Positions 1,927 through 64,000 of a stretch of DNA of 64,000 nucleotides are shown piece by piece. The translations under genes were made by a program, and so were the position numbers. This DNA comes from Octopus bimaculoides (lineage: Eukaryota). Each line of letters begins with the position of its first letter. Position 1 is the stretch's first letter. The stretch is from contig NC_068981.1 in the NCBI RefSeq assembly GCF_001194135.2, positions 68,129,239-68,193,238 on the forward strand, in the 5' to 3' direction. A model generated the notes under the pieces. It had not been told where the DNA came from. It was given only the letters and a program-made list of their open reading frames with translations, and did not search any database.

Positions 1927-3114
1927 GAATACGGTATATATGCGGGCGTTTGCTTGTCAGTATTTTAATTTCAATAGTGAATGTATAAATTGCATACTAT
2001 TTTTTTTTGTTCTATTTGTTAATATTATCTCTAAAACTCATTTTCACTAAAATTCTGCGCACATGTAGATAACTCTCTTAAAAAAAATTGTTAATTGGTC
2101 TTTTATATTGAATAGCTTCCTTGTTTTTTGTTATCGAAATTAATATATAAAAATATCAATCACACTTGGGTAATATCAGCATTTGCAACGATCAGTATGT
2201 AATCACTGAAAGAACTTTATAAACATATGTAAAGAACTAAGAATACTTATTTAAGTATAATCCTTTGTTCATTCTTATCGTACTAAATTTTAAGGGAACC
2301 ATCTGTTTCATATGACAAATATACGAAAGAAAATCATCGATTATTTCAACAATAATAACAATGATGAATAAACATAAACGTGAACAACACATACACTTGT
2401 TCCGTTAACTTCAAACGAAATATTTTAAAAGAGGATAATATAGAACCAAATATATATTTACACACAAAAAATATATACTCGAGAATGAATGAATGTAGGC
2501 GTATGTATGTGTGCGTTCGTATTAGTAGAGGGGTCGTTTGCATCTGCGGGCCTGTATTATTTCTGTGTGTATCCGTCTGCGTACACAATATGTAGATTAT
2601 ATAAATATATATGTGTGTATGTGCGTATATGTAAGTGTGTGTGTGCGAGTTTGTGTGTATGCATATATGTATATATGTATTATCTGGATATACTTAGACA
2701 TAATAGAAATATTCGCTCCTGTCTATAAAGAGACACATATGCATATTATATATCTAAATATATTGCAAGCAATTCCAATTTAGGTAAAACGCCAGCATTT
2801 TAATCAGTTCGACCTACGTGGTACTATATTGTACGGGTCTGAGAGTGATAAGAGTTACAGTTCACTATGATTCGATATTTAACACGCCACTTAAGCACCC
2901 CCCCCCCNNNNNNNNNNNNNNNNNNNNNNNNNNNNNNNNNNNNNNNNNNNNNNNNNNNNNNNNNNNNNNNNNNNNNNNNNNNNNNCGCGATCACATACCG
3001 GGATAGGTGCGTATATATATGTACACCCCCATGTATATATATATATATATATATATATACCTGTGTCATCTATCTATCTATCTATCTATCTGTCTATATA
3101 TATATATATATAAG

Positions 3115-4701
3115 CTACAGACATAATTATCAAAGTCCCCTCACCTGATAACCTGAAACTAAGACCAATAATAGCAGGTCCAGCATGTGAAACCCACCGT
3201 CTCAGCAGCTTCTTGGAAATTCTACTGAAACCCTTCCTAAAACACATCAAGAGCTTTATAAGGGATGACCTGGACATGCTAAACCACCTCCCAAAAACGG
3301 TCAATGAAAAAACACTACGAGTATCCTTCAACGTAGTCAACCTATATTCAAACATCCCCCACACTTTAGGAAGAGAAGCTATCACTTTCTGGTTAGACAT
3401 TTACACATATGAACTCCCCTCTCGCATTTAAAAAAGAACTTATAATAGAAGGACTTAGATTTATTCTAAAAAAAATATTATTTTATATTTAACAGCGAAT
3501 ACTTCCAACAAAAATCGGGAACTGCAATGGGAACACGGACTGCGCCTATTTTTGCGAACCTAGTAATGGGCTATCTCGAGATTAACCTATACCAGAGAAC
3601 ACTCGAGAAATATGGAAGCTCCTTTTCCACATACATACAAAACAGCTGGAAAAGATATCTCGATGACTGTTTCATCCTCTGGAATGAAAGTATAGAAAAG
3701 CTCAACGAATTCCAAACACTTCTAAACGGAATAAACGAAAGCCTCCAGTTTACGATGGAATACAACAACCAACAACTACCGTTCTTAGATATCCTCATAA
3801 AGAAAGTCGGAAACAAGATAGAGACAGACATCTATTATAAACCCACTGACTTGAAACAGTACCTACCATTTGATTCTTGCCACCCGAGACACACCAGGAC
3901 CAATATCCCATTTTGTTTATCCAAAAGAATATGTACTATAGTATCAGATTCAGGCACCCGTTACATACGACTCCAGGAATTGAAATCGACACTCATAAAT
4001 AGAAACTATCCACAGCCCTTAATCGAAAATACGATCAAAAGAGTACTTCAATTAAATACACAAGAGCTTAGACAACCAAGACCCAAGAAGGAAGAAAAAT
4101 TAAAAACCCTGCCTTACATCTCCACACACAGCCCACACAACAGTGAGGCCTTCAACAACATACTCCACAGCACAGCTCTACTCAAGAAAGACCAAAAAAT
4201 GAACCAAATCCTCAAAACACATACAATCGTCAAAAGTAAGAGGCAACCAAAATCAATGAAAAAGATTACTCAACAATAACCACTAAACCTACAGTAAAAC
4301 AATGCGGAAGACCCAGCTGTGGGATTTGTGTCAACGTAATAGAAGGATCAGAACATCGATTAGAACAAGGTCATAATTTCACAGTAAAAACTAAATTTAC
4401 ATGTGCATCGGATAACTTGATCTACCTAATTACATGCTCTGGATGCAGACGGCAATATATTGGACACACTAAAAACAGCATACGTCAGAGGATGGCGGTA
4501 CACAAATCCCAAATTAGGATCTCAGAAAACAGGAAAATACCTCTCAGCCAGCACATCGACGAATGTGCTTACAACAAATTTCCCAAATTCACAACGTTTC
4601 CTCTATACAAATTCAACGACAATGCTAGCCAAAATGAACGCATTAGCAAAGAAATATTTTTTATAAGAAAATACCGACCAAGTCTAAATTCTCTAAACTA
4701 G
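3115..4701 (+). mobile_element. Penelope-like retroelement (PLE), 5'-truncated, RT + GIY-YIG endonuclease, two frameshifts
   Basis: Three consecutive frames: LRPIIAGP...SFNVVNLYSNIPH (3115-3431); GTAMGTRTAPIFANLVMG...WKRYLDDCFILW...LPFLDI...DIYYKPTD...SCHPRH (3527-4279); Cys linker CGRPSCGIC then NLIYLITCSGCRRQYIGHT...RMAVHKS (GIY-YIG) to stop at 4701. Frameshifts near 3430-3480 and 4270. 3' flank falls in a gap. Confidence 0.95.
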
Positions 4702-6019
4702 CAACACTGAAACTTTCATATATATTTGAATATTTTTATACGAATATTTGCAAGTTATTCATAAGNNNNNNNNNNNNNNNNNNNNNNNNNNNNNNNNNNN
4801 NNNNNNNNNNNNNNNNNNNNNNNNNNNNNNNNNNNNNNNNNNNNNNNNNNNNNNNNNNNNNNNNNNNNNNNNNNNNNNNNNNNNNNNNNNNNNNNNNNNN
4901 NNNNNNNNNNNNNNNNNNNNNNNNNNNNNNNNNNNNNNNNNNNNNNNNNNNNNNNNNNNNNNNNNNNNNNNNNNNNNNNNNNNNNNNNNNNNNNNNNNNN
5001 NNNNNNNNNNNNNNNNNNNNNNNNNNNNNNNNNNNNNNNNNNNNNNNNNNNNNNNNNNNNNNNNNNNNNNNNNNNNNNNNNNNNNNNNNNNNNNNNNNNN
5101 NNNNNNNNNNNNNNNNNNNNNNNNNNNNNNNNNNNNNNNNNNNNNNNNNNNNNNNNNNNNNNNNNNNNNNNNNNNNNNNNNNNNNNNNNNNNNNNNNNNN
5201 NNNNNNNNNNNNNNNNNNNNNNNNNNNNNNNNNNNNNNNNNNNNNNNNNNNNNNNNNNNNNNNNNNNNNNNNNNNNNNNNNNNNNNNNNNNNNNNNNNNN
5301 NNNNNNNNNNNNNNNNNNNNNNNNNNNNNNNNNNNNNNNNNNNNNNNNNNNNNNNNNNNNNNNNNNNNNNNNNNNNNNNNNNNNNNNNNNNNNNNNNNNN
5401 NNNNNNNNNNNNNNNNNNNNNNNNNNNNNNNNNNNNNNNNNNNNNNNNNNNNNNNNNNNNNNNNNNNNNNNNNNNNNNNNNNNNNNNNNNNNNNNNNNNN
5501 NNNNNNNNNNNNNNNNNNNNTATATATATACATATATATACACACACAAACAGACACACACACATATATTTACATGCAGCTAAATATACGTCCGGTTATA
5601 GAGTGACGAATGATTTCGTATCCATAAAGAACTTAACTTTATAGATGACGCGTATGACTCTTATGGTGGTGGGCATGTAATATATCTTGTAACTAGATGT
5701 TGGAAACCGTTACTGTCAGTTAATTTGTAAATAAAGGAGTATATACGCTGTTTAAGCTTTAAACAGGCCATGTCGGAATGACAAGCCAGATGGACATAAA
5801 ATGTGCTAAAGGGAATCTCTGCCCTTAGGCTCTCTCCAGTCTACAACAACTTTTTAAGGTTCCGAAAAGACGTTACACACGTATATGCACAAATTTTCAG
5901 TTGCTGCGGTTAAAACACCTATAAAGAACATACAATTTAGTTTTCGAAGCTATATCAGCAAAAAAAAAATGCTACACATGAAATTTAATAAAAATGATAA
6001 TAATAATAATAATAATAAT

Positions 6020-6235
6020 AATTCTTTCTACTATAGGCACAAGGTCTGCAATGTGGAGGAGGGGACAAGTCGATTACATCAACCCCAGTGCGAAATTGGT
6101 ATTTAATCGACCTCGAAAGGATGAAACGCAAAGCCAACCTTGGCAGAATTTGAACTCAGAACGTTTCGACAGATCATTGACCGCGAAATATTTCTTCCAG
6201 CGAGCTAACGATTCTGCTAGCTGACCGCCTTAATA
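6020..6235 (-). mobile_element. tRNA-related SINE, family A
   Basis: Minus strand reads GGCGGTCAGCTAGCAGAATCGTTAGC...GTTCTGAGTTCAAATTCTGCC (B-box-like)...TTTCATCCTTTCGAGGTCGATTAAATACC, with (ATT)n tail. Many copies in the window. Confidence 0.8.
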
Positions 6236-6241
6236 ATAATT

Positions 6242-6400
6242 CTTCGTACTATAGGCACATGACCTGAAAGTTTGCGGAGGGACTAGACGATCACATTGAT
6301 ACCAGTGTGCAACTGGTACTTATTGCCTCGACCGCGAAAGGATGAAAGGCAAATTCGAACTCGGCGAAATTTGAATTTATAACGATGGTGCCAGATCGCC
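6242..6400 (-). mobile_element. SINE family A, second tandem copy (degraded head)
   Basis: Same tail (ACTATAGGCAC) and central GGTACTT...CGAAAGGATGAAAGGC...GGCGAAATTTGAA as the copy at 6020. Confidence 0.7.
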
Positions 6401-6759: not shown

Positions 6760-7950
6760 AAAAACAGAGCTCAATGCTAAAAACAAGATAATGGGTATCA
6801 ACACTTTAGCTGTCCCAGTTATAAGCTACAGCTACAACATCCTTAACTGGACACTAAACGAACTATGTAAAATAGACAGGAAAACAAGAAAAATAATGAC
6901 AGGATATAGGATGCACCNNNNNNNNNNNNNNNNNNNNNNNNNNNNNNNNNNNNNNNNNNNNNNNNNNNNNNNNNNNNNNNNNNNNNNNNNNNNNNNNNNN
7001 NNNNNNNNNNNNNNNNNNNNNNNNNNNNNNNNNNNNNNNNNNNNNNNNNNNNNNNNNNNNNNNNNNNNNNNNNNNNNNNNNNNNNNNNNNNNNNNNNNNN
7101 NNNNNNNNNNNNNNNNNNNNNNNNNNNNNNNNNNNNNNNNNNNNNNNNNNNNNNNNNNNNNNNNNNNNNNNNNNNNNNNNNNNNNNNNNNNNNNNNNNNN
7201 NNNNNNNNNNNNNNNNNNNNNNNNNNNNNNNNNNNNNNNNNNNNNNNNNNNNNNNNNNNNNNNNNNNNNNNNNNNNNNNNNNNNNNNNNNNNNNNNNNNN
7301 NNNNNNNNNNNNNNNNNNNNNNNNNNNNNNNNNNNNNNNNNNNNNNNNNNNNNNNNNNNNNNNNNNNNNNNNNNNNNNNNNNNNNNNNNNNNNNNNNNNN
7401 NNNNNNNNNNNNNNNNNNNNNNNNNNNNNNNNNNNNNNNNNNNNNNNNNNNNNNNNNNNNNNNNNNNNNNNNNNNNNNNNNNNNNNNNNNNNNNNNNNNN
7501 NNNNNNNNNNNNNNNNNNNNNNNNNNNNNNNNNNNNNNNNNNNNNNNNNNNNNNNNNNNNNNNNNNNNNNNNNNNNNNNNNNNNNNNNNNNNNNNNNNNN
7601 NNNNNNNNNNNNNNNNNNNNNNNNNNNNNNNNNNNNNNNNNNNNNNNNNNNNNNNNNNNNNNNNNNNNNNNNNNNNNNNNNNNNNNNNNNNNNNNNNNNN
7701 NNNNNNNNNNNNNNNNNNNNNNNNNNNNNNNNNNNNNNNNNNNNNNNNNNNNNNNNNNNNNNNNNNNNNNNNNNNNNNNNNNNNNNNNNNNNNNNNNNNN
7801 NNNNNNNNNNNNNNNNNNNNNNNNNNNNNNNNNNNNNNNNNNNNNNNNNNNNNNNNNNCTACATGAACTTCTAACTTGTTGTCTCTTGAGGTCTCTGGGT
7901 GAGACTTGGATCCAACTTGTACAAATGCAAAACAAAAGTCAAACATAAAA
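6756..7950 (+). mobile_element. R4/Dong-clade non-LTR retrotransposon, 5'-truncated, middle in N gap
   Basis: Starts right after (TAA)n. Encodes LKTELNAKNKIMGINTLAVPVISYSYNILNWT...IDRKTRKIMTGYRMH, paralogous to 8300-8465. After the gap, a 3' UTR similar to 53680-53748 ends in (TAA)n. Continuity across the gap is assumed. Confidence 0.75.
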
Positions 7951-7966
7951 TGATAATAATAATAAT

Positions 7967-9297
7967 GTTACGGCAAGAACAATCAGCCACCCTTTACATA
8001 TGTTTGACCTAAAACTATACGCTACAAATGATAAACAGCTGGAAACACTACTACACACAATACATGGATTTTTCAAAGAAATACATATGAAATTTGGATT
8101 AGAAAAATGTGGCAAAGCAACCCCGAAAAGAGGAAAACTTATTAAGAGTAGCAACATTACACTAGATAAAGCCAATGAAATAAGAGAATTAGACCAAAGC
8201 CAGACATACAAATATTTAGGAATCAATGAACTAGATAGGATACAACACACACAAATGAAAGAGAAAATAAAGAAAGAATACTATAGAGGAGTTAGTTCAA
8301 TACTGAAAAGAGAGTTCAGTGCTAAAAACAAGATAATAGGCATTAACACTTTAGCCGTCCCAGTTATAAGTTAAAGCTACAATATCCTTAACTGGACACT
8401 AAAATAACTAACGAAAATAGACAGGAAAACAAGAAAAATAATGATAGGATCTAGGATGCACCACCTAAAATCTGACATAGAAAGGCTATATATACAAAGT
8501 ACAGATGGTGGTAGAGGCCTTATGCAGCTGGAAAACTTTTATAAAATAACCACCATAGGACTGCAAAACTACCTACTTTAGAAGCATGGAAAACTAATAC
8601 AAATAGCAACAAAACACGAGCAAAACAAAAAAAACTGTTTTCAGTATATCAGGAAGTAGACAAATACACACAGGAAAGCATACTACCTAATAAAGAAGAA
8701 GAAGAAGAAGAAGAAGAAGAAGAAGAAGAAGAAGAAGAAGAAGAAGAAGAAGAAGAAGAAGAAGAAGAAGAAGAAGAAGAAACAACAAAGGCTATAAAAC
8801 AAATGAAATCCAAACTAAAACTAAAACAGCAACGGACCATGATAAAACGATAGCAAGAAAAAACACCTTCATGGCAAATACTGGGCTAAACTAAATGCAA
8901 AAGAAATAGACAGAGAAAAATCCCAGCAATGGTTGAGAAGCTCATGACTCAAATCAGAGACTGAAGGATTTTTAATTGCTGCACAAGACCAAAGCCAACA
9001 CAGTAGAAAATACCAAAAAAACATATAAGGAAAAGTAACATAAGTAACTGCAGAATATGTGGCGATGGACAAGAAAGAAAGAAAAAAAACATATTACCTC
9101 AGGCTGCTCAAGCCTGGCTTAGAAGGAATATATTCACAGACACGACAGAGCTGTGTGGCCTACATACACTGGAAGCTATGCCAACACTATGGAATAACAA
9201 GAGAAAATGATGGTATAGGCTCACGCCAGAAATGGTCACAGAAAACGAGCAAGCAACCATACTCTGGGATATACCAATACACACAGATAGAGAAAAT
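7967..9297 (+). mobile_element. R4/Dong-clade non-LTR retrotransposon fragment (RT C-terminus, thumb, CCHC knuckle, start of RLE)
   Basis: (MF)DLKLYA...MKFGLEKC...YKYLGI...INTLAVPVIS; HPKS-like DIERLY...GGRGL; ETEGFLIAAQDQ; CRICG/KKEYIHRH/YIHWKLCQHYG; TILWDIPIHTDREI. Several stops and frameshifts. Begins directly after (TAA)n. Confidence 0.9.
8695..8781 (+). repeat. (GAA)29 microsatellite, in frame inside the R4/Dong ORF
   Basis: Counted 29 GAA units between LPNK and TTKAIKQMK. Confidence 0.95.
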
Positions 9298-9404
9298 AGT
9301 GTTATTATGTACATTATTTTGTCTTGGTATAATAGATGGGCTCCAACAAATATCCTCCTCAATACCACAGAATTGCTTGTTAGTTGTTTGACCATAACCA
9401 GTTG

Positions 9405-24149: not shown

Positions 24150-24560
24150 CTATTTGGGAAGTGAGGATACGGGAAAGTCGATTAGATGGAAGCCAGTACG
24201 CAACCGGTGCTTAATTTCTCGACCTCGAAAAGATGAAATTCAAAATTGACCTTGGCGGAATTTGAAGTCAGAACGTAAGGACAAACGAAATACCGCTAAG
24301 CGTTTCGCCCGGCATGCTAACGTTTCTTATTTCTTTATTCCCACAAGGGGCTAAACATAGAGGCGACAAAGAAGGACAGGCAAAGGGATTAAGTCTATTA
24401 GGTCAACCACAGTGCCTTACTGGTACTTAATTTATCGACCCCGAAAGGATGAAATGCAAAGTCGACTTCGGCGGAATTTGAACTCAGATCGTAACGGCAG
24501 ACGAAATGTCGCGAAGCATTTCGCCCGGCGTGCACACGTTTTTGCCAGGTCGCCGCCTTA
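24150..24560 (-). mobile_element. Two SINE family A copies, the second abutting or inserted into the head of the first
   Basis: Repeated GAAAGATGAAA...GGCGGAATTTGAA...GACGAAAT...CATTTCGCCCGGC. Junction at about 24326 (CTAACGTTTC|TTATTTCTTTATTCCCACAAGG). Confidence 0.85.
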
Positions 24561-26338: not shown

Positions 26339-29300
26339 NNNNNNNNNNNNNNNNNNNNNNNNNNNNNNNNNNNNNNNNNNNNNNNNNNNNNNNNNNNNNN
26401 NNNNNNNNNNNNNNNNNNNNNNNNNNNNNNNNNNNNNNNNNNNNNNNNNNNNNNNNNNNNNNNNNNNNNNNNNNNNNNNNNNNNNNNNNNNNNNNNNNNN
26501 NNNNNNNNNNNNNNNNNNNNNNNNNNNNNNNNNNNNNNNNNNNNNNNNNNNNNNNNNNNNNNNNNNNNNNNNNNNNNNNNNNNNNNNNNNNNNNNNNNNN
26601 NNNNNNNNNNNNNNNNNNNNNNNNNNNNNNNNNNNNNNNNNNNNNNNNNNNNNNNNNNNNNNNNNNNNNNNNNNNNNNNNNNNNNNNNNNNNNNNNNNNN
26701 NNNNNNNNNNNNNNNNNNNNNNNNNNNNNNNNNNNNNNNNNNNNNNNNNNNNNNNNNNNNNNNNNNNNNNNNNNNNNNNNNNNNNNNNNNNNNNNNNNNN
26801 NNNNNNNNNNNNNNNNNNNNNNNNNNNNNNNNNNNNNNNNNNNNNNNNNNNNNNNNNNNNNNNNNNNNNNNNNNNNNNNNNNNNNNNNNNNNNNNNNNNN
26901 NNNNNNNNNNNNNNNNNNNNNNNNNNNNNNNNNNNNNNNNNNNNNNNNNNNNNNNNNNNNNNNNNNNNNNNNNNNNNNNNNNNNNNNNNNNNNNNNNNNN
27001 NNNNNNNNNNNNNNNNNNNNNNNNNNNNNNNNNNNNNNNNNNNNNNNNNNNNNNNNNNNNNNNNNNNNNNNNNNNNNNNNNNNNNNNNNNNNNNNNNNNN
27101 NNNNNNNNNNNNNNNNNNNNNNNNNNNNNNNNNNNNNNNNNNNNNNNNNNNNNNNNNNNNNNNNNNNNNNNNNTATATATATATATATATATACCGAATG
27201 TGAGGGAGGGACGCGGAGACGGATAATAAACAGAGATAGATAAGTATATAGATAGATAAACAGACAGGTAGATTAATGTATATAAGAATAAAAGCGTGTA
27301 TGTAGAATGAAATATTTATTGCATTAAAGATAAGAAAATTATATATATGAGCTGTTTCTACGTGTCCGCATGTGTGTATGTTTAAACAGGTTGCCATCAA
27401 GAAGAAAAAGAAGACGAAGGAGAGAGAGTGAGAGAGAGAAATATATGAATTTGTATTAAAATGCAAAAATGATGCCATTTTCGCATGATCTCCACTCTTA
27501 CATTTAATAGTTCTTACTACGTAAATGACAAGTTCATATAATAAATTACAATTGTCCAACAATTGCAGCTGTAACAACATTCTCAAGCTTGTAATGTATA
27601 CGTTAATTTGCATGGTTGAATTTCAATTATAATTAGGTTATAGTGAAAGTTTCTCGGAGAGGCCTATCTGTCTATGAGATAAGTAAAACAACCACGTAAT
27701 TTACATGCGGTGTCAGAAGATCAGGTATGATGATTTAAGTACATATAGATCTATGAAACTGAGACAACTGCTGATTTCCAGATCATGTATATGTATATGT
27801 GCATATACATTTACATATATGCGTATACATATATATATATATATATATANNNNNNNNNNNNNNNNNNNNNNNNNNNNNNNNNNNNNNNNNNNNNNNNNNN
27901 NNNNNNNNNNNNNNNNNNNNNNNNNNNNNNNNNNNNNNNNNNNNNNNNNNNNNNNNNNNNNNNNNNNNNNNNNNNNNNNNNNNNNNNNNNNNNNNNNNNN
28001 NNNNNNNNNNNNNNNNNNNNNNNNNNNNNNNNNNNNNNNNNNNNNNNNNNNNNNNNNNNNNNNNNNNNNNNNNNNNNNNNNNNNNNNNNNNNNNNNNNNN
28101 NNNNNNNNNNNNNNNNNNNNNNNNNNNNNNNNNNNNNNNNNNNNNNNNNNNNNNNNNNNNNNNNNNNNNNNNNNNNNNNNNNNNNNNNNNNNNNNNNNNN
28201 NNNNNNNNNNNNNNNNNNNNNNNNNNNNNNNNNNNNNNNNNNNNNNNNNNNNNNNNNNNNNNNNNNNNNNNNNNNNNNNNNNNNNNNNNNNNNNNNNNNN
28301 NNNNNNNNNNNNNNNNNNNNNNNNNNNNNNNNNNNNNNNNNNNNNNNNNNNNNNNNNNNNNNNNNNNNNNNNNNNNNNNNNNNNNNNNNNNNNNNNNNNN
28401 NNNNNNNNNNNNNNNNNNNNNNNNNNNNNNNNNNNNNNNNNNNNNNNNNNNNNNNNNNNNNNNNNNNNNNNNNNNNNNNNNNNNNNNNNNNNNNNNNTAT
28501 ATATATATATATATATGTTAATGACACCAAAACAGATGCGTTGTGGAAAGCCCACTAAACTAGGCTATTCGAATGAAGAAAGCCTTCTAATAACGTCCCA
28601 TCGCGTTGAAAAAAGAAAAAAAAACGAAATGTATCACTGGCATTTGGAAATAATACACCAGAGATGATGTCATTGTGGAATACATAATTATGCTTCTTTG
28701 AGACTTGCCAGTTGCCAGTTTCCACTGGCACCGCATGCAAACAATATGTGCCCCCCCCCCGCTTCTATAGTTAAGCAGTGAATAAATAATCAATGACACC
28801 GCATTTAGCTGGCAGACTGAAAAAACGTTCATTATCTCCGACTGAAACAGTATTTCTTCAAAATAGCGGTGTGTGTATCATACCTAAAGCACATATGGGA
28901 GCCTGTTACAGGTGTAGGCTAACAATCTCTCATAGTCGTATAGAATCGAAGAGTAACTTCTTTTATTGATGTGTAATCACCGAGACATTTTCCAATATGC
29001 AGGGAATCAACGTCATTTTCATTGTCACCATAATCATCTTATCTGTTTTGAGGGATTGTGCATCAACGATCATATAATTCAAAGTGTTCATGTTATGTGG
29101 GAAACTTTTCCTCTTCTTCTTAACAAATAGAATAATAAGACAGAGATTCTTCGTTTGATATTAAAGAGTATTCTTGTATAATTTTGTCATATATGAAATT
29201 TCAATCTTGCGCTGATTTCTGAAATGCATTAAAAGAAACTGCGCTTTAAGTGTTATTTTAGATATATGGTATCTAAATGTATTTCAAATAGAAAACACGC

Positions 29301-35580: not shown

Positions 35581-35644
<64 letters not shown>

Positions 35645-35649
<5 letters not shown>

Positions 35650-36447
35650 TAGTTTTATTTTTATAACGTGCTTTCACTTCACTACCGAGCGCAGCTCTGT
35701 GCGCCTTGGGTATGTGCTGTTGTTTGCTGTGGTGCTCTTATGGTTACTGTATTGAAAGTGTTTTGCGTAGGATGTGTGCAGTGCCCAGTGGTGCAATTTT
35801 CTGTATGTTATATATATTTGTAAGTCCTGGTGTTTTTGTTATGTATTTGTCTGAATATTTTTGTATTATACCTAAGACACCTACTATACTNNNNNNNNNN
35901 NNNNNNNNNNNNNNNNNNNNNNNNNNNNNNNNNNNNNNNNNNNNNNNNNNNNNNNNNNNNNNNNNNNNNNNNNNNNNNNNNNNNNNNNNNNNNNNNNNNN
36001 NNNNNNNNNNNNNNNNNNNNNNNNNNNNNNNNNNNNNNNNNNNNNNNNNNNNNNNNNNNNNNNNNNNNNNNNNNNNNNNNNNNNNNNNNNNNNNNNNNNN
36101 NNNNNNNNNNNNNNNNNNNNNNNNNNNNNNNNNNNNNNNNNNNNNNNNNNATGATATTTGACAACTATATTTGCTCTATTTGACTTAATTTCTTTATCTG
36201 TGTGTATTGGCATATCCCAGAGTATGGTTGTTTTCTCGTTCTCTGTGACCTTTTCTGGCGTGTGTTTATACCATCTTTTTTCTTTTGTTATTCCATAGTG
36301 TTGGCATAGCTTCCATTGTATATAGGTCCCAGCTCTGCCGTGTCTGTGAATATATTCCTTCTTAGCCAGGACTGGGCAGCCAGATATAAAATGATTTATT
36401 GTTTCTTGTCCATATCCACATATTCTAGTTACTTGTTATGTTTCTTT

Positions 36448-36448
<1 letters not shown>
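35645..36448 (-). mobile_element. R4/Dong-clade element 3' end (CCHC, RLE, 3' UTR) embedded in (TAA)n
   Basis: CRICGYGQETINHFISGCPVLAKKEY...WKLCQHYG...TILWDMPIHTDKEIKSNRANIVV, gap, then IVGVLGII...IQKIAPLGTAHILRKTLSIQ*. UTR ends CTACTGAA(TAA)n. (TAA)n on both sides. Confidence 0.92.
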
Positions 36449-36503
<55 letters not shown>

Positions 36504-49746: not shown

Positions 49747-50038
49747 GGCACAATGGCCCAGTGGTTAGGGCAGTGGACTCGCGGTCGTAGGATAACGGTT
49801 TCAATTCCCATACCCAATTGTGAGTGATTATTGAGCGAATACACCTAAAGTTCCTTGAGGCTCCAGCAGGGGGTGGTGGTGAACCCTGCTGTACTCTTTC
49901 ACCACAACTTTCTCTCACTCTATCTTCCTGTTTCTGTTGTACCTGCATTTCAAAGGGCCAGCCTTGTCACACTCTGGTCGCGGTGAATCTCCCTCGAGAA
50001 CTACGTTAAGGGTACACATGTCTGTGGAGTGCTCAGCC
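49747..50038 (+). mobile_element. tRNA-derived SINE (family B)
   Basis: GGCACAATGGCCCAGTGGTTAGGGCAGTGGACTCGCGGTCG...CGGTTTCAATTCCC (A and B boxes, tRNA-like head), then non-tRNA body. Interrupted by family A copies. Confidence 0.8.
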
Positions 50039-50039
50039 C

Positions 50040-50366
50040 CAGTGCGTAACTGGTACTTATTTAATCGACCCCGAAATGATGAAAGGCTAAGTCGACATCG
50101 GTGGAATTTGAACTCAACGTAGCAGCAGACGAAATACCTATTTCTTTACTGCCCACAAGAGGCTACACACAGAGAGGACAAACAAGGACAGACAAACGGA
50201 TTAAGTCGATTATATCGACCCCAGTGCGTAACTGGTACTTAATTTATCGACCCCGAAAGGATGAAAGGTAAAGTCGACCTCGGCGGAATTTGAACTCAGA
50301 ACGCAGTGGCAGACGAAATACCGCTGAGCATTTCACCCGGCTTGCTAACACTTCTGTCAGCTCGCC
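50040..50366 (-). mobile_element. Two nested SINE family A copies
   Basis: Duplicated CCAGTGCGTAACTGGTACTT...GACCCCGAAA.GATGAAAGG..AAGTCGAC. Junction GAAATACC|TATTTCTTTACTGCCCACAAG at about 50138. Confidence 0.9.
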
Positions 50367-53863: not shown

Positions 53864-53922
<59 letters not shown>

Positions 53923-53923
<1 letters not shown>

Positions 53924-54074
53924 TGCACTACTGGGTACTGCACACATTCTACGCAAAACACTTTCAATACAGTAAACATAAGAGCACCACAGCAAACCAC
54001 AGCACATACCCAAGGCACACAGTGCTGCGCTCGGTAGTGAAGTGAAAGCACGTTATAAAAATAAAACTACTGAA
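53923..54074 (+). mobile_element. 152-bp 5'-truncated Dong-like 3' end inside (TAA)n
   Basis: IALLGTAHILRKTLSIQ* plus UTR. I count 7 differences over 152 nt from the reverse complement of 35645-35798. Confidence 0.95.
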
Positions 54075-54075
54075 C

Positions 54076-54120
<45 letters not shown>

Positions 54121-54149
54121 CATTATAATAACAATAATAATATTAATAA

Positions 54150-59302: not shown

Positions 59303-59334
<32 letters not shown>

Positions 59335-59344
59335 TATTATTATT

Positions 59345-60026
59345 TCTAATATATGCACAAGGCCTAACATTTGAGCGAGGAGCAAAGTCATTTTCATCGA
59401 CGCCGGCGTTTCACTGGTTCTGTATTTATCGGCCCATAGAGAATGAAAGGTAAATTCAACGTCGGCAGAATATGTATTCAGGACGTAGTGACAGACGAAA
59501 TATCGCTAAATACTTCGCCTGGCGTGCTAACGATTCTGCCAAATCGGTGCCTGAAAAATCCTTTCTGCTGGAAGGACAGAGCCTCAAATTTTGGCGGAAG
59601 GGTTAAGTCGATTGAAGTGACCTCAATACGTAACTGGTACTAATTTTATGGATCCCGAAAGGATGAATGGTAAGGTCGACATCGGCGAAATTCGAACTCG
59701 AAACCTAACGACAGACGAAATACCGCTAAGCATTTCGCCGGTCGTGCTAACGATTCTGCCAGCTCGCCGCCTTAATAATCTTACTAATAATAAATATCAT
59801 TATAATAATAATGGTTTCAAATTTTGCCACAAGGGCAGCTATTTTGAAGAAGGGGGTAATCGATTACTTCGATTCCAGTGTTTAACTGGTACTTAATTTA
59901 TTGACCCCGAAAGAATAAAAGGCAAAGTTCGCCTCGGCAGTATTTGAACTCTGAACGTAGCGGCAGAAGAAATACCGCTAAGCAATTCGTCCTGCATGCT
60001 ATCGATTCTGCAAGCTCACCGCCTTA
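59345..60026 (-). mobile_element. Three head-to-tail SINE family A copies
   Basis: Units about 59345-59550, 59555-59772 and 59810-60026. Each has GACGAAAT.CCGCTAAG...GCTAACGATTCTGCC. The last two end GCCGCCTT/ACCGCCTT-AATAAT. Confidence 0.9.
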
Positions 60027-60139
60027 ATAATCATTATAATTATAAATGGCATTGTAACCATATGTTGAAAGGAATTCTTTGGGGCTTGGATAGTTCAACT
60101 CTGGAAATGTAGGTGTTTTGTTCATCATTCATAAACAAC

Positions 60140-60274
60140 CCTGATTCACGGTTGTTGTTGTTGCTGTTGTTATTATTATTATTTAAAAAAAGTTTATTAT
60201 TATTATTATTATCATCATCATCATTATCATCATCATTATTATTATTATTAATATTATTACTATTATTATTATTA

Positions 60275-60323
<49 letters not shown>

Positions 60324-60360
60324 CGTTGTTGTTGTTGTTGTTACTGTTGTTGTTGTTGTT

Positions 60361-60392
<32 letters not shown>

Positions 60393-60402
60393 CATTATTA
60401 TT
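60140..60402. repeat. Compound (TTG)/(TTA)/(TCA) trinucleotide microsatellite
   Basis: Directly visible. Explains the poly-L/N/I/T ORFs in the track. Confidence 0.95.
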
Positions 60403-60505
60403 GAGGGAGAGAGCAGAGGATGCCATCAAATTGACACTGGGGTAAAATATACAAAAGAAAACAAAACAACAGTTCGCTAATGTTTTATAAATACAAAGAA
60501 TAGTT

Positions 60506-61370
60506 TTATTCATCAAGGTATGCACTCATATTGTCAATACACTTTTGCCATTTTAGCGGTAGTTTCTCCGGACCGGAACTGTAAAAGCTTGGCAATCTAG
60601 AGTCATTAAAATCTCGGAAGACTTGTTTTACAGCATCGTCAGAATTAATTTTTTTCCTATCAAAAAGTTATCCAAATTCTGAAAGAAGAGTTGTCAGTGG
60701 GAGAAAGATGAGGTGGGTCTGGTGGATGATGGAGAACTTCCAACTCCATATTCTGTAGTTTCGCCAATAGCATTTTTGGGATGAGTGGTGTAGCGTTGTC
60801 TTGTAAAATAATATGAGTGGATCTGTTATCTAATCTAGGCTGTTTTTTTTTTTGTAAGTTCCTGCATCATTCGGTCCTGGTCTGCAGTATACTTCGGCCG
60901 TGATTGATGAGCCAGGTTTAATGCGCCAGACCACCAAACCCACACCATGAGCTTCTTTTGATGAATATTGCTTTCCAGACTGTGTTCTTGTGGCCCATCT
61001 TTTTCCAGTCATTGTGCTGAACGTTTACGGTTGTTGTATTGGTTACATTTCTCTTTGCATGTTAAAATTCAATTCAGAAATGATTTATATTTTTGATGAG
61101 AAAGTAGCATAATACAGGCTTCCAAACGTTGATGTTTCTGATTTTCATTGAGTTCATGCGGAACCCACTTATCCAAATCTTTCACTATATCGATTTGAAT
61201 TAGGTGAGTCAATATTGTTTGCTTGCTAACGCCAAACAACAACAATAATATTCACGAGCACTTTGAGATGGACCTGACTCGATGGCAGCTTTCAGTTCCT
61301 CATTATCCACCTTTGTTTCTGGTCGACTACATTTATCTTTAAAATTTTATTCCACAAAATTAAGCACTAT
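60506..61370 (-). mobile_element. Mariner transposase pseudogene
   Basis: WVPHELNENQKHQRLEAC; NRKRSAQ; LVVWRIKPGSSITAEVYC; LQDNA.PL; HHPP.PPHLSPTD; FQNLDNFLIGKK; KWQKCIDNMSAYLDE*. Multiple frameshifts. Confidence 0.92.
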
Positions 61371-62194: not shown

Positions 62195-63030
62195 CATAAA
62201 GCGACGAGCTCACAGAATGATTAACGCAACGGAAATAATGCTTAACAGTATTTTGTACGTCTCTACGTTTTGAGTTTAAACGACTACGGGCTGACGTTGC
62301 TATTCATCCTTTCAGAATAGATAAAATAAGCACCAGTTGAACATTGGCGTCGACGCAGACGTAATTGCTAGTCCTGTACGAAAACTTGAAACCGATAATT
62401 ATAGGTCACGTTAAGGAAGCGAGTATACATCATCATTAAAGCCGGGCAAAATACTCAACGACAATTCATCTGTTTTACATTTAAATGCGCTGAGGGGGTG
62501 ACTTTGCCTTTCATTCATATGTGCATGTTTGTACCGATAGATATATAATTATTTGAAAGTTATGCCATATCATTCTAAGCACAAGCGATATTTTGTGTAT
62601 GTGTACTTAGTGACGTTTCATCCGGCTTTGTATGTTTTGACTTCAAATTCGCCAGTGGTTGAATCTACCTTTCATAATATCGGATTAGTAAAAAGTAGTA
62701 CCGGTTGAATCCTAGGATCAATGACATCGACTTTTCCCCTAGGATCAATGTCATCGACTTATCCCCTCTTCACAAACTGCTTCCTTTCTGTCAAAATTTT
62801 GAACCAGTATTTATCGGTGACGTTGATGCGGCGAGCTAGTAGCAACTTAGGCACACTAGGCAAAATGTTTAGCATAATTTTTTCCGCCTTTGGCTTTTGA
62901 GTTCAAATCCCAGCCTTGTAGACTCCCTTTCATCCTTCCTTGCAGGGATGATAAGTATCTCTAGAACACTGGCGTCGAAAACATTATCTATTGCTTTCCC
63001 TTATAATTGCAGGTCTTGTGCCAAAGTTTG
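62195..63030 (+). mobile_element. Three degraded SINE family A copies (sense)
   Basis: Units about 62195-62360, 62610-62810 and 62828-63030. Each has TTTTGAGTT.AAA/TTCAAATTC...TTTCAT(CC)TT and GCG.CGAGCT-type heads on two of them. Confidence 0.6.
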
Positions 63031-63357: not shown

Positions 63358-63742
63358 ATTACGATATTTTAACAGACATAATAGCGCCATATCATAAATA
63401 ATGTAATCGTATAATGTTATACAATACGTTGACATAAAAACTGAAAATTATTTTACTTCCTCTATGTAGGAATCTACATAGAGGATATATATCATTATAT
63501 AAACATCACAGCCTATATTCGATGAATATATGGAACATTATTAATTTTAGAATGACTGATACGTGAAGAAAATATCAAACAAACGATCTAGACATTCTAT
63601 TGAATATCAAGAAGAACAGAAAAAATACGTAGCATGAAGAAATAGTATAGAAGTATAAAAAGTTGGAGATAAAACAAAGTGTGAAACTTTGCCATGTAGT
63701 TTTCGATAACAAGATATTATCATAGATATAGTTTTCTTTTAC

Positions 63743-63811
63743 CTGACAATGCTGTCTATTATGTAGAAACCAGGACTTACCTGCAAAGAAAAAAATAGAA
63801 AGCAAACGAAA
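63743..63811 (-). other. Candidate recursive splice site (3'ss immediately followed by 5'ss) with possible 38-nt RS-exon
   Basis: Minus strand: TTTCGTTTGCTTTCTATTTTTTTCTTTGCAG|GTAAGT, junction 63781/63780. A second donor CAG|GTAAAA lies 38 nt downstream. Confidence 0.45.
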
Positions 63812-64000
63812 TTACCTTAAATGTATTACCTTATTGAATAACATAGAAATCGAATAACATCATTATAAACAAACATAAGAATAAAGAAACACTGAAGTAC
63901 ATGAAAATATACATATATGTATATATACATGCATTTAAAATACACAAATATTCATGTATAAGTTTGAATATGAATGTATTATATATATATATATATATAT

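Follow-up and report, generated by a model that had tools for sequence, protein, structure and literature searches.

The window analysed here, a stretch of 64,000 nt of Octopus bimaculoides DNA, carries on its minus strand, close to its far end, a compact series of splicing signals (Table 1), and the minus strand reads across them as GGTAAT TTCGTTTGCTTTCTATTTTTTTCTTTGCAG|GTAAGTCCTGGTTTCTACATAATAGACAGCATTGTCAG|GTAAAAG. A branch-point-like TAAT is followed by a long pyrimidine tract and a GCAG acceptor, the acceptor is fused directly to a GTAAGT donor, and a second donor, GTAAAA, follows a short way downstream. Motifs and spacing can be read directly from the DNA, and the earlier sequence-only reading, which had described an acceptor fused to GTAAGT with a further donor behind it, agrees with them in all its coordinates and counts (24 of 27 pyrimidines, AG at 63782-63781, 38 nt). 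Signal strength was assessed with an acceptor-plus-donor weight matrix made from metazoan consensus frequencies, and scores are accordingly approximate and not octopus-trained; by this measure the GCAG acceptor, at 16.0 bits, is the top minus-strand acceptor of the window, and the GTAAGT donor, with the 9-mer CAGGTAAGT, reaches 12.9 bits and ranks second among the minus-strand donors. The downstream GTAAAA donor scores 6.5 bits as against the 12.9 bits of GTAAGT; no other GT between +10 and +200 exceeds 2 bits, and the donor could delimit a putative cryptic RS-exon by way of exon definition. The minus strand is furthermore free of AG from the TAAT, with its adenosines at -33 and -32, to the acceptor, and the sequence and position of TAAT at about -32 suggest that it may serve as the branch point. 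Two UGC motifs, TTTGCTTTC and TTTGCAG, are likewise found in or beside the pyrimidine tract (63783-63803, minus strand).

Table 1. Features of the candidate site and of its surroundings in the window (positions count from the first letter of the window; offsets in nt are relative to the acceptor-donor junction).
Feature	Position	Strand	Details
Branch-point-like TAAT	63811..63814	-	candidate branch adenosines 63813 and 63812, at -33 and -32 from the junction
Polypyrimidine tract	63785..63811	-	24/27 pyrimidines; TT at -6/-5
Acceptor GCAG	63781..63784	-	AG at 63782-63781; junction between 63781 and 63780
Donor GTAAGT fused to acceptor	63775..63780	-	consensus match; putative regenerated 5' splice site
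Putative cryptic RS-exon, 38 nt	63743..63780	-	38 mod 3 = 2; stops in one of three frames
Weaker downstream donor CAG|GTAAAA	63737..63742	-	GT at 63742-63741, exactly 38 nt past the first GT
SINE- or tRNA-related-looking fragments	62580-62960	+	GAGTTCAAATCCCAGCC; 27-bp tandem duplication at 62711-62767
Dispersed SINE-like repeat family	5986-6384, 24171-24560, 50033-50366, 59304-60057		tandem or partial copies, 67-88% identity
Penelope-like retroelement	3114-4698	+	GIY-YIG above the Pfam threshold, RVT_1 match weak
Retroelement fragments	3.1-4.7, 7.9-9.4, 51-52.6 and 56.6 kb	+	
Retroelement fragments	~31-36.5 and 39.5-40 kb	-	
Inverted LINE-like 3' end pair	9025-9298 vs 36186-36454		84% identity
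Inverted LINE-like 3' end pair	35581-35798 vs 53921-54138		94.5% identity
Example N-gap stretches	4766-5520, 6918-7858, 26339-27173		

The surroundings of the site are rich in repeats. Octopods supply the best relatives of the Penelope-like element (Octopus vulgaris at 72% identity, Argonauta hians, and O. bimaculoides itself), followed by bivalves and gastropods (oysters, mussels and abalone), in support of an octopod origin of the window. The element is the one retroelement of the window that Pfam confirms, the other fragments having been identified by eye. The inverted LINE-like pairs show that related retroelement copies are present on both strands, and the orientation of such fragments, which was considered as a clue to the transcribed strand, is uninformative since they occur on both. 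An open frame of 161 codons on the minus strand (60040-60525) was likewise set aside, since it consists mostly of Asn and Asp codons and reflects the low complexity of AAT/ATT-type microsatellites rather than a gene. The window holds 19 N gaps with a total of 6197 bases, nearly all of which border TA or CA microsatellites, a pattern typical of a short-read draft assembly, and no N gap is found within 5 kb of the candidate site.

The site itself appears to lie outside the repeats. Apart from a microsatellite end, the region 63400-63900 has no other copy within the 64-kb window, its reading frames match no protein and no Pfam family, and none of the at least four SINE-like copies found elsewhere in the window is similar to it, so that as far as these comparisons reach the site does lie in unique, non-TE DNA, as had been claimed from the letters. 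These findings bear on the notion that the site is a cryptic splice site derived from a repeat, in which case the tract would lie antisense to an old retroposon on the plus strand, opposite its A-rich tail or body, comparable to the exonisation of antisense Alu elements. Such an origin would agree with the plus-strand sequence of the tract, AAAGAAAAAAATAGAAAGCAAACGAAA, which belongs to a segment (63540-63900) that is A-rich throughout on the plus strand, and with a window crowded with retroelements and SINE-like copies, some of them within 800 nt of the site. It is however very improbable, since the region resembles no other part of the window in spite of the SINE-like copies present there, since it has no protein or Pfam similarity, and since the A-richness extends over hundreds of bases and does not have the form of a terminal tail. 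The strongest plus-strand acceptor look-alike of the window, at 62946 and with 16.8 bits, does lie in a SINE-like fragment about 800 nt from the site, and repeats in this window can thus mimic strong acceptors.

Exons and a host gene were sought throughout the window. A set of 17 concatenated reading frames from both strands of 61.4-63.8 kb, which could have revealed an annotated exon or gene calls at the corresponding locus of related octopods, had no match in a database of 5.8 billion protein sequences, and a protein search with 79 GC-richer, stop-free segments of non-TE sequence taken from elsewhere in the window (4921 aa in all) was likewise without a match. In an index of 153 billion genes neither the 76-aa frame across the site nor a 250-aa retroelement frame has an exact entry, none of ten more reading frames from 61.3-63.9 kb is present in the protein collection consulted, and the 22-mer of the site has, as expected, no exact match in the JGI metagenome contigs. 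An Rfam scan of the whole window, carried out for intronic snoRNAs or miRNAs as clues to the host strand, gave nothing at threshold. No coding exon is thus detectable in the window by these searches, which short or untranslated exons would escape, and a window of this kind fits a giant intron as well as intergenic DNA and is no proof of an intron. The annotation of O. vulgaris counts 8.36 genes per Mb, and the median length is 20.3 kb for genes and 2.5 kb for introns (PMC10700109); from this gene density and these intron sizes an exon-free stretch of 64 kb would more likely be intergenic than a single intron. Giant introns do however certainly exist in octopus, since neuronal expression is over-represented among its long genes (PMC7222433). 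A small surplus of T relative to A in the non-TE sequence of the minus strand (skew 0.034) would offer weak support for a recursive splice site and is too small to weigh.

The strength and rarity of the motif can be stated more firmly. When all 285 AGGT sites on both strands of the window were scored with the consensus matrix, the candidate reached 28.9 bits (acceptor 16.0, donor 12.9), whereas the runner-up scored 19.5 bits and the best plus-strand AGGT 17.2 bits; the candidate is thus ahead by 9 bits, in agreement with the assertion of the sequence-only reading that no other site of such quality occurs on either strand. Among windows simulated with Markov models of order 1, 3 and 5 (300 windows each), the numbers holding a site of at least 28.9 bits were 0, 0 and 1, such that 899 of the 900 fell below the score of the candidate. 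The exact expectation under independent bases is 3.8e-4 sites per window, or about 18 on both strands of the octopus genome, the size of which we take to be 2.7 Gb here and in the estimates below.

Independent bases are however a poor guide to pyrimidine tracts in this DNA. With 8.5 bits, the final 16 nt of the tract are matched at just 0.44% of the window positions, but this share is 17 times the one expected for independent bases. On the minus strand, moreover, T makes up 44% of the 500-bp patch around the site, a composition that favours pyrimidine tracts. Once the real abundance of tracts is taken into account, the chance rate rises to about 0.005 per window, which for a 2.7-Gb genome corresponds to some 200 sites over the two strands. 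The probability that a random window position has a donor of 6.5 bits or more between +25 and +100 is 0.083, and if such a nearby donor is required as well, the joint expectation falls to about 4e-4 per window, which corresponds to some 20 sites in the genome. The motif is thus genuinely rare, yet a scan of several hundred windows could yield one by accident.

It is accordingly a real possibility, though one we put well short of an even chance, that the site is a functionless juxtaposition, produced where unique AT-rich DNA, intergenic or intronic, has a T-rich patch that by accident closes with CAG and runs on into GTAAGT. Besides the corrected rate and the T-rich patch, this notion agrees with the fact that each strand of the window has several strong look-alikes of acceptors and likewise of donors, with the lack of any exon, RNA family or protein match nearby, and with the gene density of octopus, from which exon-free 64-kb stretches should mostly be intergenic. 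It has on the other hand to account for the lead of the candidate over the runner-up, for the near failure of the simulations to reach its score, and for the full combination of tract, CAG|GTAAGT, TT, AG-free zone, TAAT and lone donor at +38, which is the combination expected at the joint rate of about 4e-4 per window.

The combination can also be compared with published recursive splice sites. In flies, 197 ratchet points have been described in introns of 11-133 kb, with a strongly conserved core, a TT at -5/-6 in 99.5% of them, and branch points between -36 and -21 with a peak at -30 (Duff et al., 10.1101/006163). Recursive sites are present in most fly introns longer than 40 kb. Their 3' splice sites surpass ordinary ones in strength, and strong 5' splice sites are over-represented in the segments downstream, in agreement with exon definition (Pai et al., PMC6110457). 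The cryptic RS-exons of flies are about 50 nt long and generally out of frame, and the donor that closes them gives way to the regenerated ratchet donor (Joseph et al., PMC8605326). The octopus candidate has a juxtaposed AG|GT with an unusually strong pyrimidine tract (28.9 bits in all), a TT at -6/-5, which is a fly-derived mark of assumed relevance to molluscs, a TAAT that falls within the branch-point range of flies, and a weaker downstream donor (6.5 against 12.9 bits) that closes a short, out-of-frame putative RS-exon of 38 nt. At the level of sequence the candidate carries all the marks of published ratchet points with cryptic RS-exons, the TAAT being a putative branch site.

The likeness to Drosophila ratchet points such as those of Ubx, kuz and Bx extends to the juxtaposed acceptor and donor, the pyrimidine tract, the TT, the GTAAGT, a putative branch site near -30 and a short out-of-frame cryptic exon with a weaker donor. 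The Drosophila sites are however defined by junction reads, lariats, saw-tooth coverage, deep conservation and annotated introns of 11-133 kb, whereas the candidate is defined by its motif, and it is moreover found in Mollusca, a phylum for which the literature searched contains no report of recursive splicing. With the sites in long neuronal genes of vertebrates (Sibley et al. 2015, as cited in PMC8605326) the candidate has the YnNCAG|GTAAGT core in common, and the definition of an RS-exon by a downstream 5' splice site, with subsequent competition between donors, is described there much as we propose it for octopus. Vertebrates and octopus also both have large, repeat-rich genomes with long neural genes (PMC7222433). 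In mammals, however, very few fully suppressed intronic sites are established, the number noted definitively being nine as quoted in PMC8605326, and with just nine such sites in large genomes the motif alone is a poor predictor there.

The site could alternatively be an ordinary exon of 38 nt that is at least sometimes included, either as an alternative or poison cassette or as an exon of a UTR or a non-coding RNA that happens to begin with GTAAGT. The acceptor (16.0 bits) and the donor at +38 (6.5 bits) together reach 22.5 bits, which is the highest among the acceptor-donor pairs listed for the window. The UGC motifs beside the AG furthermore resemble the UGC enhancers of neuronal microexons, a parallel that is speculative. 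Hundreds of annotated mammalian exons begin with a 5' splice-site sequence (PMC6224609). We nevertheless regard an ordinary exon as unlikely. A length that is not a multiple of three, together with stops in one frame, is incompatible with a normal coding cassette; a coding cassette or microexon would be expected to preserve the frame and to match a known protein in that frame, and the surrounding frames have no match among 5.8 billion proteins. The donor is also weak beside the GTAAGT at the exon's own 5' end, which favours skipping, and a terminal exon, which was considered as well, is not obvious since neither AATAAA nor ATTAAA occurs in the 600 nt downstream of the site.

Two classes of known exons are of particular relevance to this alternative. 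The annotated RS-exons repressed by the EJC (Blazquez et al., PMC6224609) have, like the candidate, a 5' splice-site sequence directly after the acceptor, but they are included, mostly constitutive and usually coding, whereas the 38 nt in octopus are frame-shifting, are closed by a weak donor and have no protein match. Poison or cryptic exons, among them those arising by exonisation of antisense retroposon tails, resemble the candidate in having a strong tract and AG in deep non-coding sequence, and their inclusion would disrupt the frame as would that of the 38 nt. They do not however normally have a perfect GTAAGT fused to the acceptor, whereas the candidate has one, and the candidate has no repeat similarity in the window.

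Taken together, we tentatively favour the interpretation that a long intron of a minus-strand gene contains here a ratchet point with a cryptic RS-exon of 38 nt, while placing its probability a little below even. It should be stressed that the site is a good in-silico candidate rather than a demonstrated recursive splice site. The 9-bit lead, the rarity of the motif, the presence of the published marks, the lack of another copy in the window and the lack of a coding exon all count in favour of recursive splicing, whereas the base rates, the T-rich patch, the look-alike acceptor, the chance rate of about 0.005 per window and the use of a generic consensus matrix count against it. The sequence-only reading, which had proposed a ratchet point in a giant intron, is thus borne out as regards anatomy, rarity and published sequence marks, but the giant intron is in poorer agreement with the O. 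vulgaris base rates, which favour intergenic DNA.

In the model we propose, in which transcription, its strand, the host intron and each splicing step are inferred, the acceptor side, made up of the TAAT at about -32, the pyrimidine tract of 27 nt and the CAG, would be recognised by U2AF and U2, while U1 would bind the weak GTAAAA donor 38 nt downstream and, with the acceptor, define a short exon. An upstream exon, situated beyond base 64000, would then be joined to 63780 with removal of the first intron segment, and the resulting junction would read upstream exon|GTAAGTCCTGG, with GTAAGT directly after the exon. The regenerated GTAAGT donor (12.9 bits) would be expected to beat the donor of the RS-exon (6.5 bits), and in a second splicing step the 38 nt would be removed along with the remaining intron, leaving nothing of the site in the mRNA. 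Should the regenerated donor fail, the 38 nt would be included and the frame shifted, with the effect of a poison exon.

Whether the site is real hinges mainly on the number of recursive sites in octopus. If, as in the fly, most very long introns of octopus contain one, there would be more true sites of this quality than the roughly 20-200 expected by chance, and the candidate would very probably be real, but if octopus is instead like the early picture of mammals, with nine sites, the reverse holds and chance sites would outnumber true ones. The tentative weight that we give to recursive splicing reflects both of these cases, as well as the low prior of a long intron on the sense strand and the roughly eight-fold support provided by the well-placed weak donor.

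Recursive splicing has to our knowledge been demonstrated in insects and vertebrates only. A literature search for recursive splicing in octopus returned no paper, and for cephalopods and molluscs it returned one and two incidental mentions, respectively, so that the suspicion voiced from sequence that the process is uncharacterised in cephalopods agrees with the literature found, in which no paper treats recursive splicing in a cephalopod or other mollusc. It is therefore conceivable, if at somewhat less than even chances, that the site is a working octopus recursive splice site and the first in a mollusc or indeed in any lophotrochozoan. Cephalopods evolved large brains independently. Their genome is also large, and their neuronally expressed genes include very long ones (PMC7222433); this combination makes them a natural third test of whether long introns need ratchet points. 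An octopus member of the class would be worthwhile and yet expected, since recursive splicing is regarded as common to metazoans (PMC8605326).

If the interpretation is true, the stepwise removal of giant introns by way of cryptic RS-exons would date to the bilaterian ancestor, and cephalopods would process their expanded long neural genes by recursive splicing; if validated, the site would extend the mechanism to Lophotrochozoa and open a way to study how faithfully cephalopod neural genes are spliced. One motif alone does not carry these implications, and the main value of the candidate is as a prompt for a genome-wide comparison of sense and antisense strands in long octopus introns.

Finally, a perfect hairpin palindrome for which we suggest no function is found at 63459-63484, some 260 nt past the putative RS-exon when read along the minus strand, with the sequence CCTCTATGTAG-GAAT-CTACATAGAGG, in which arms of 11 nt enclose a loop of 4 nt.
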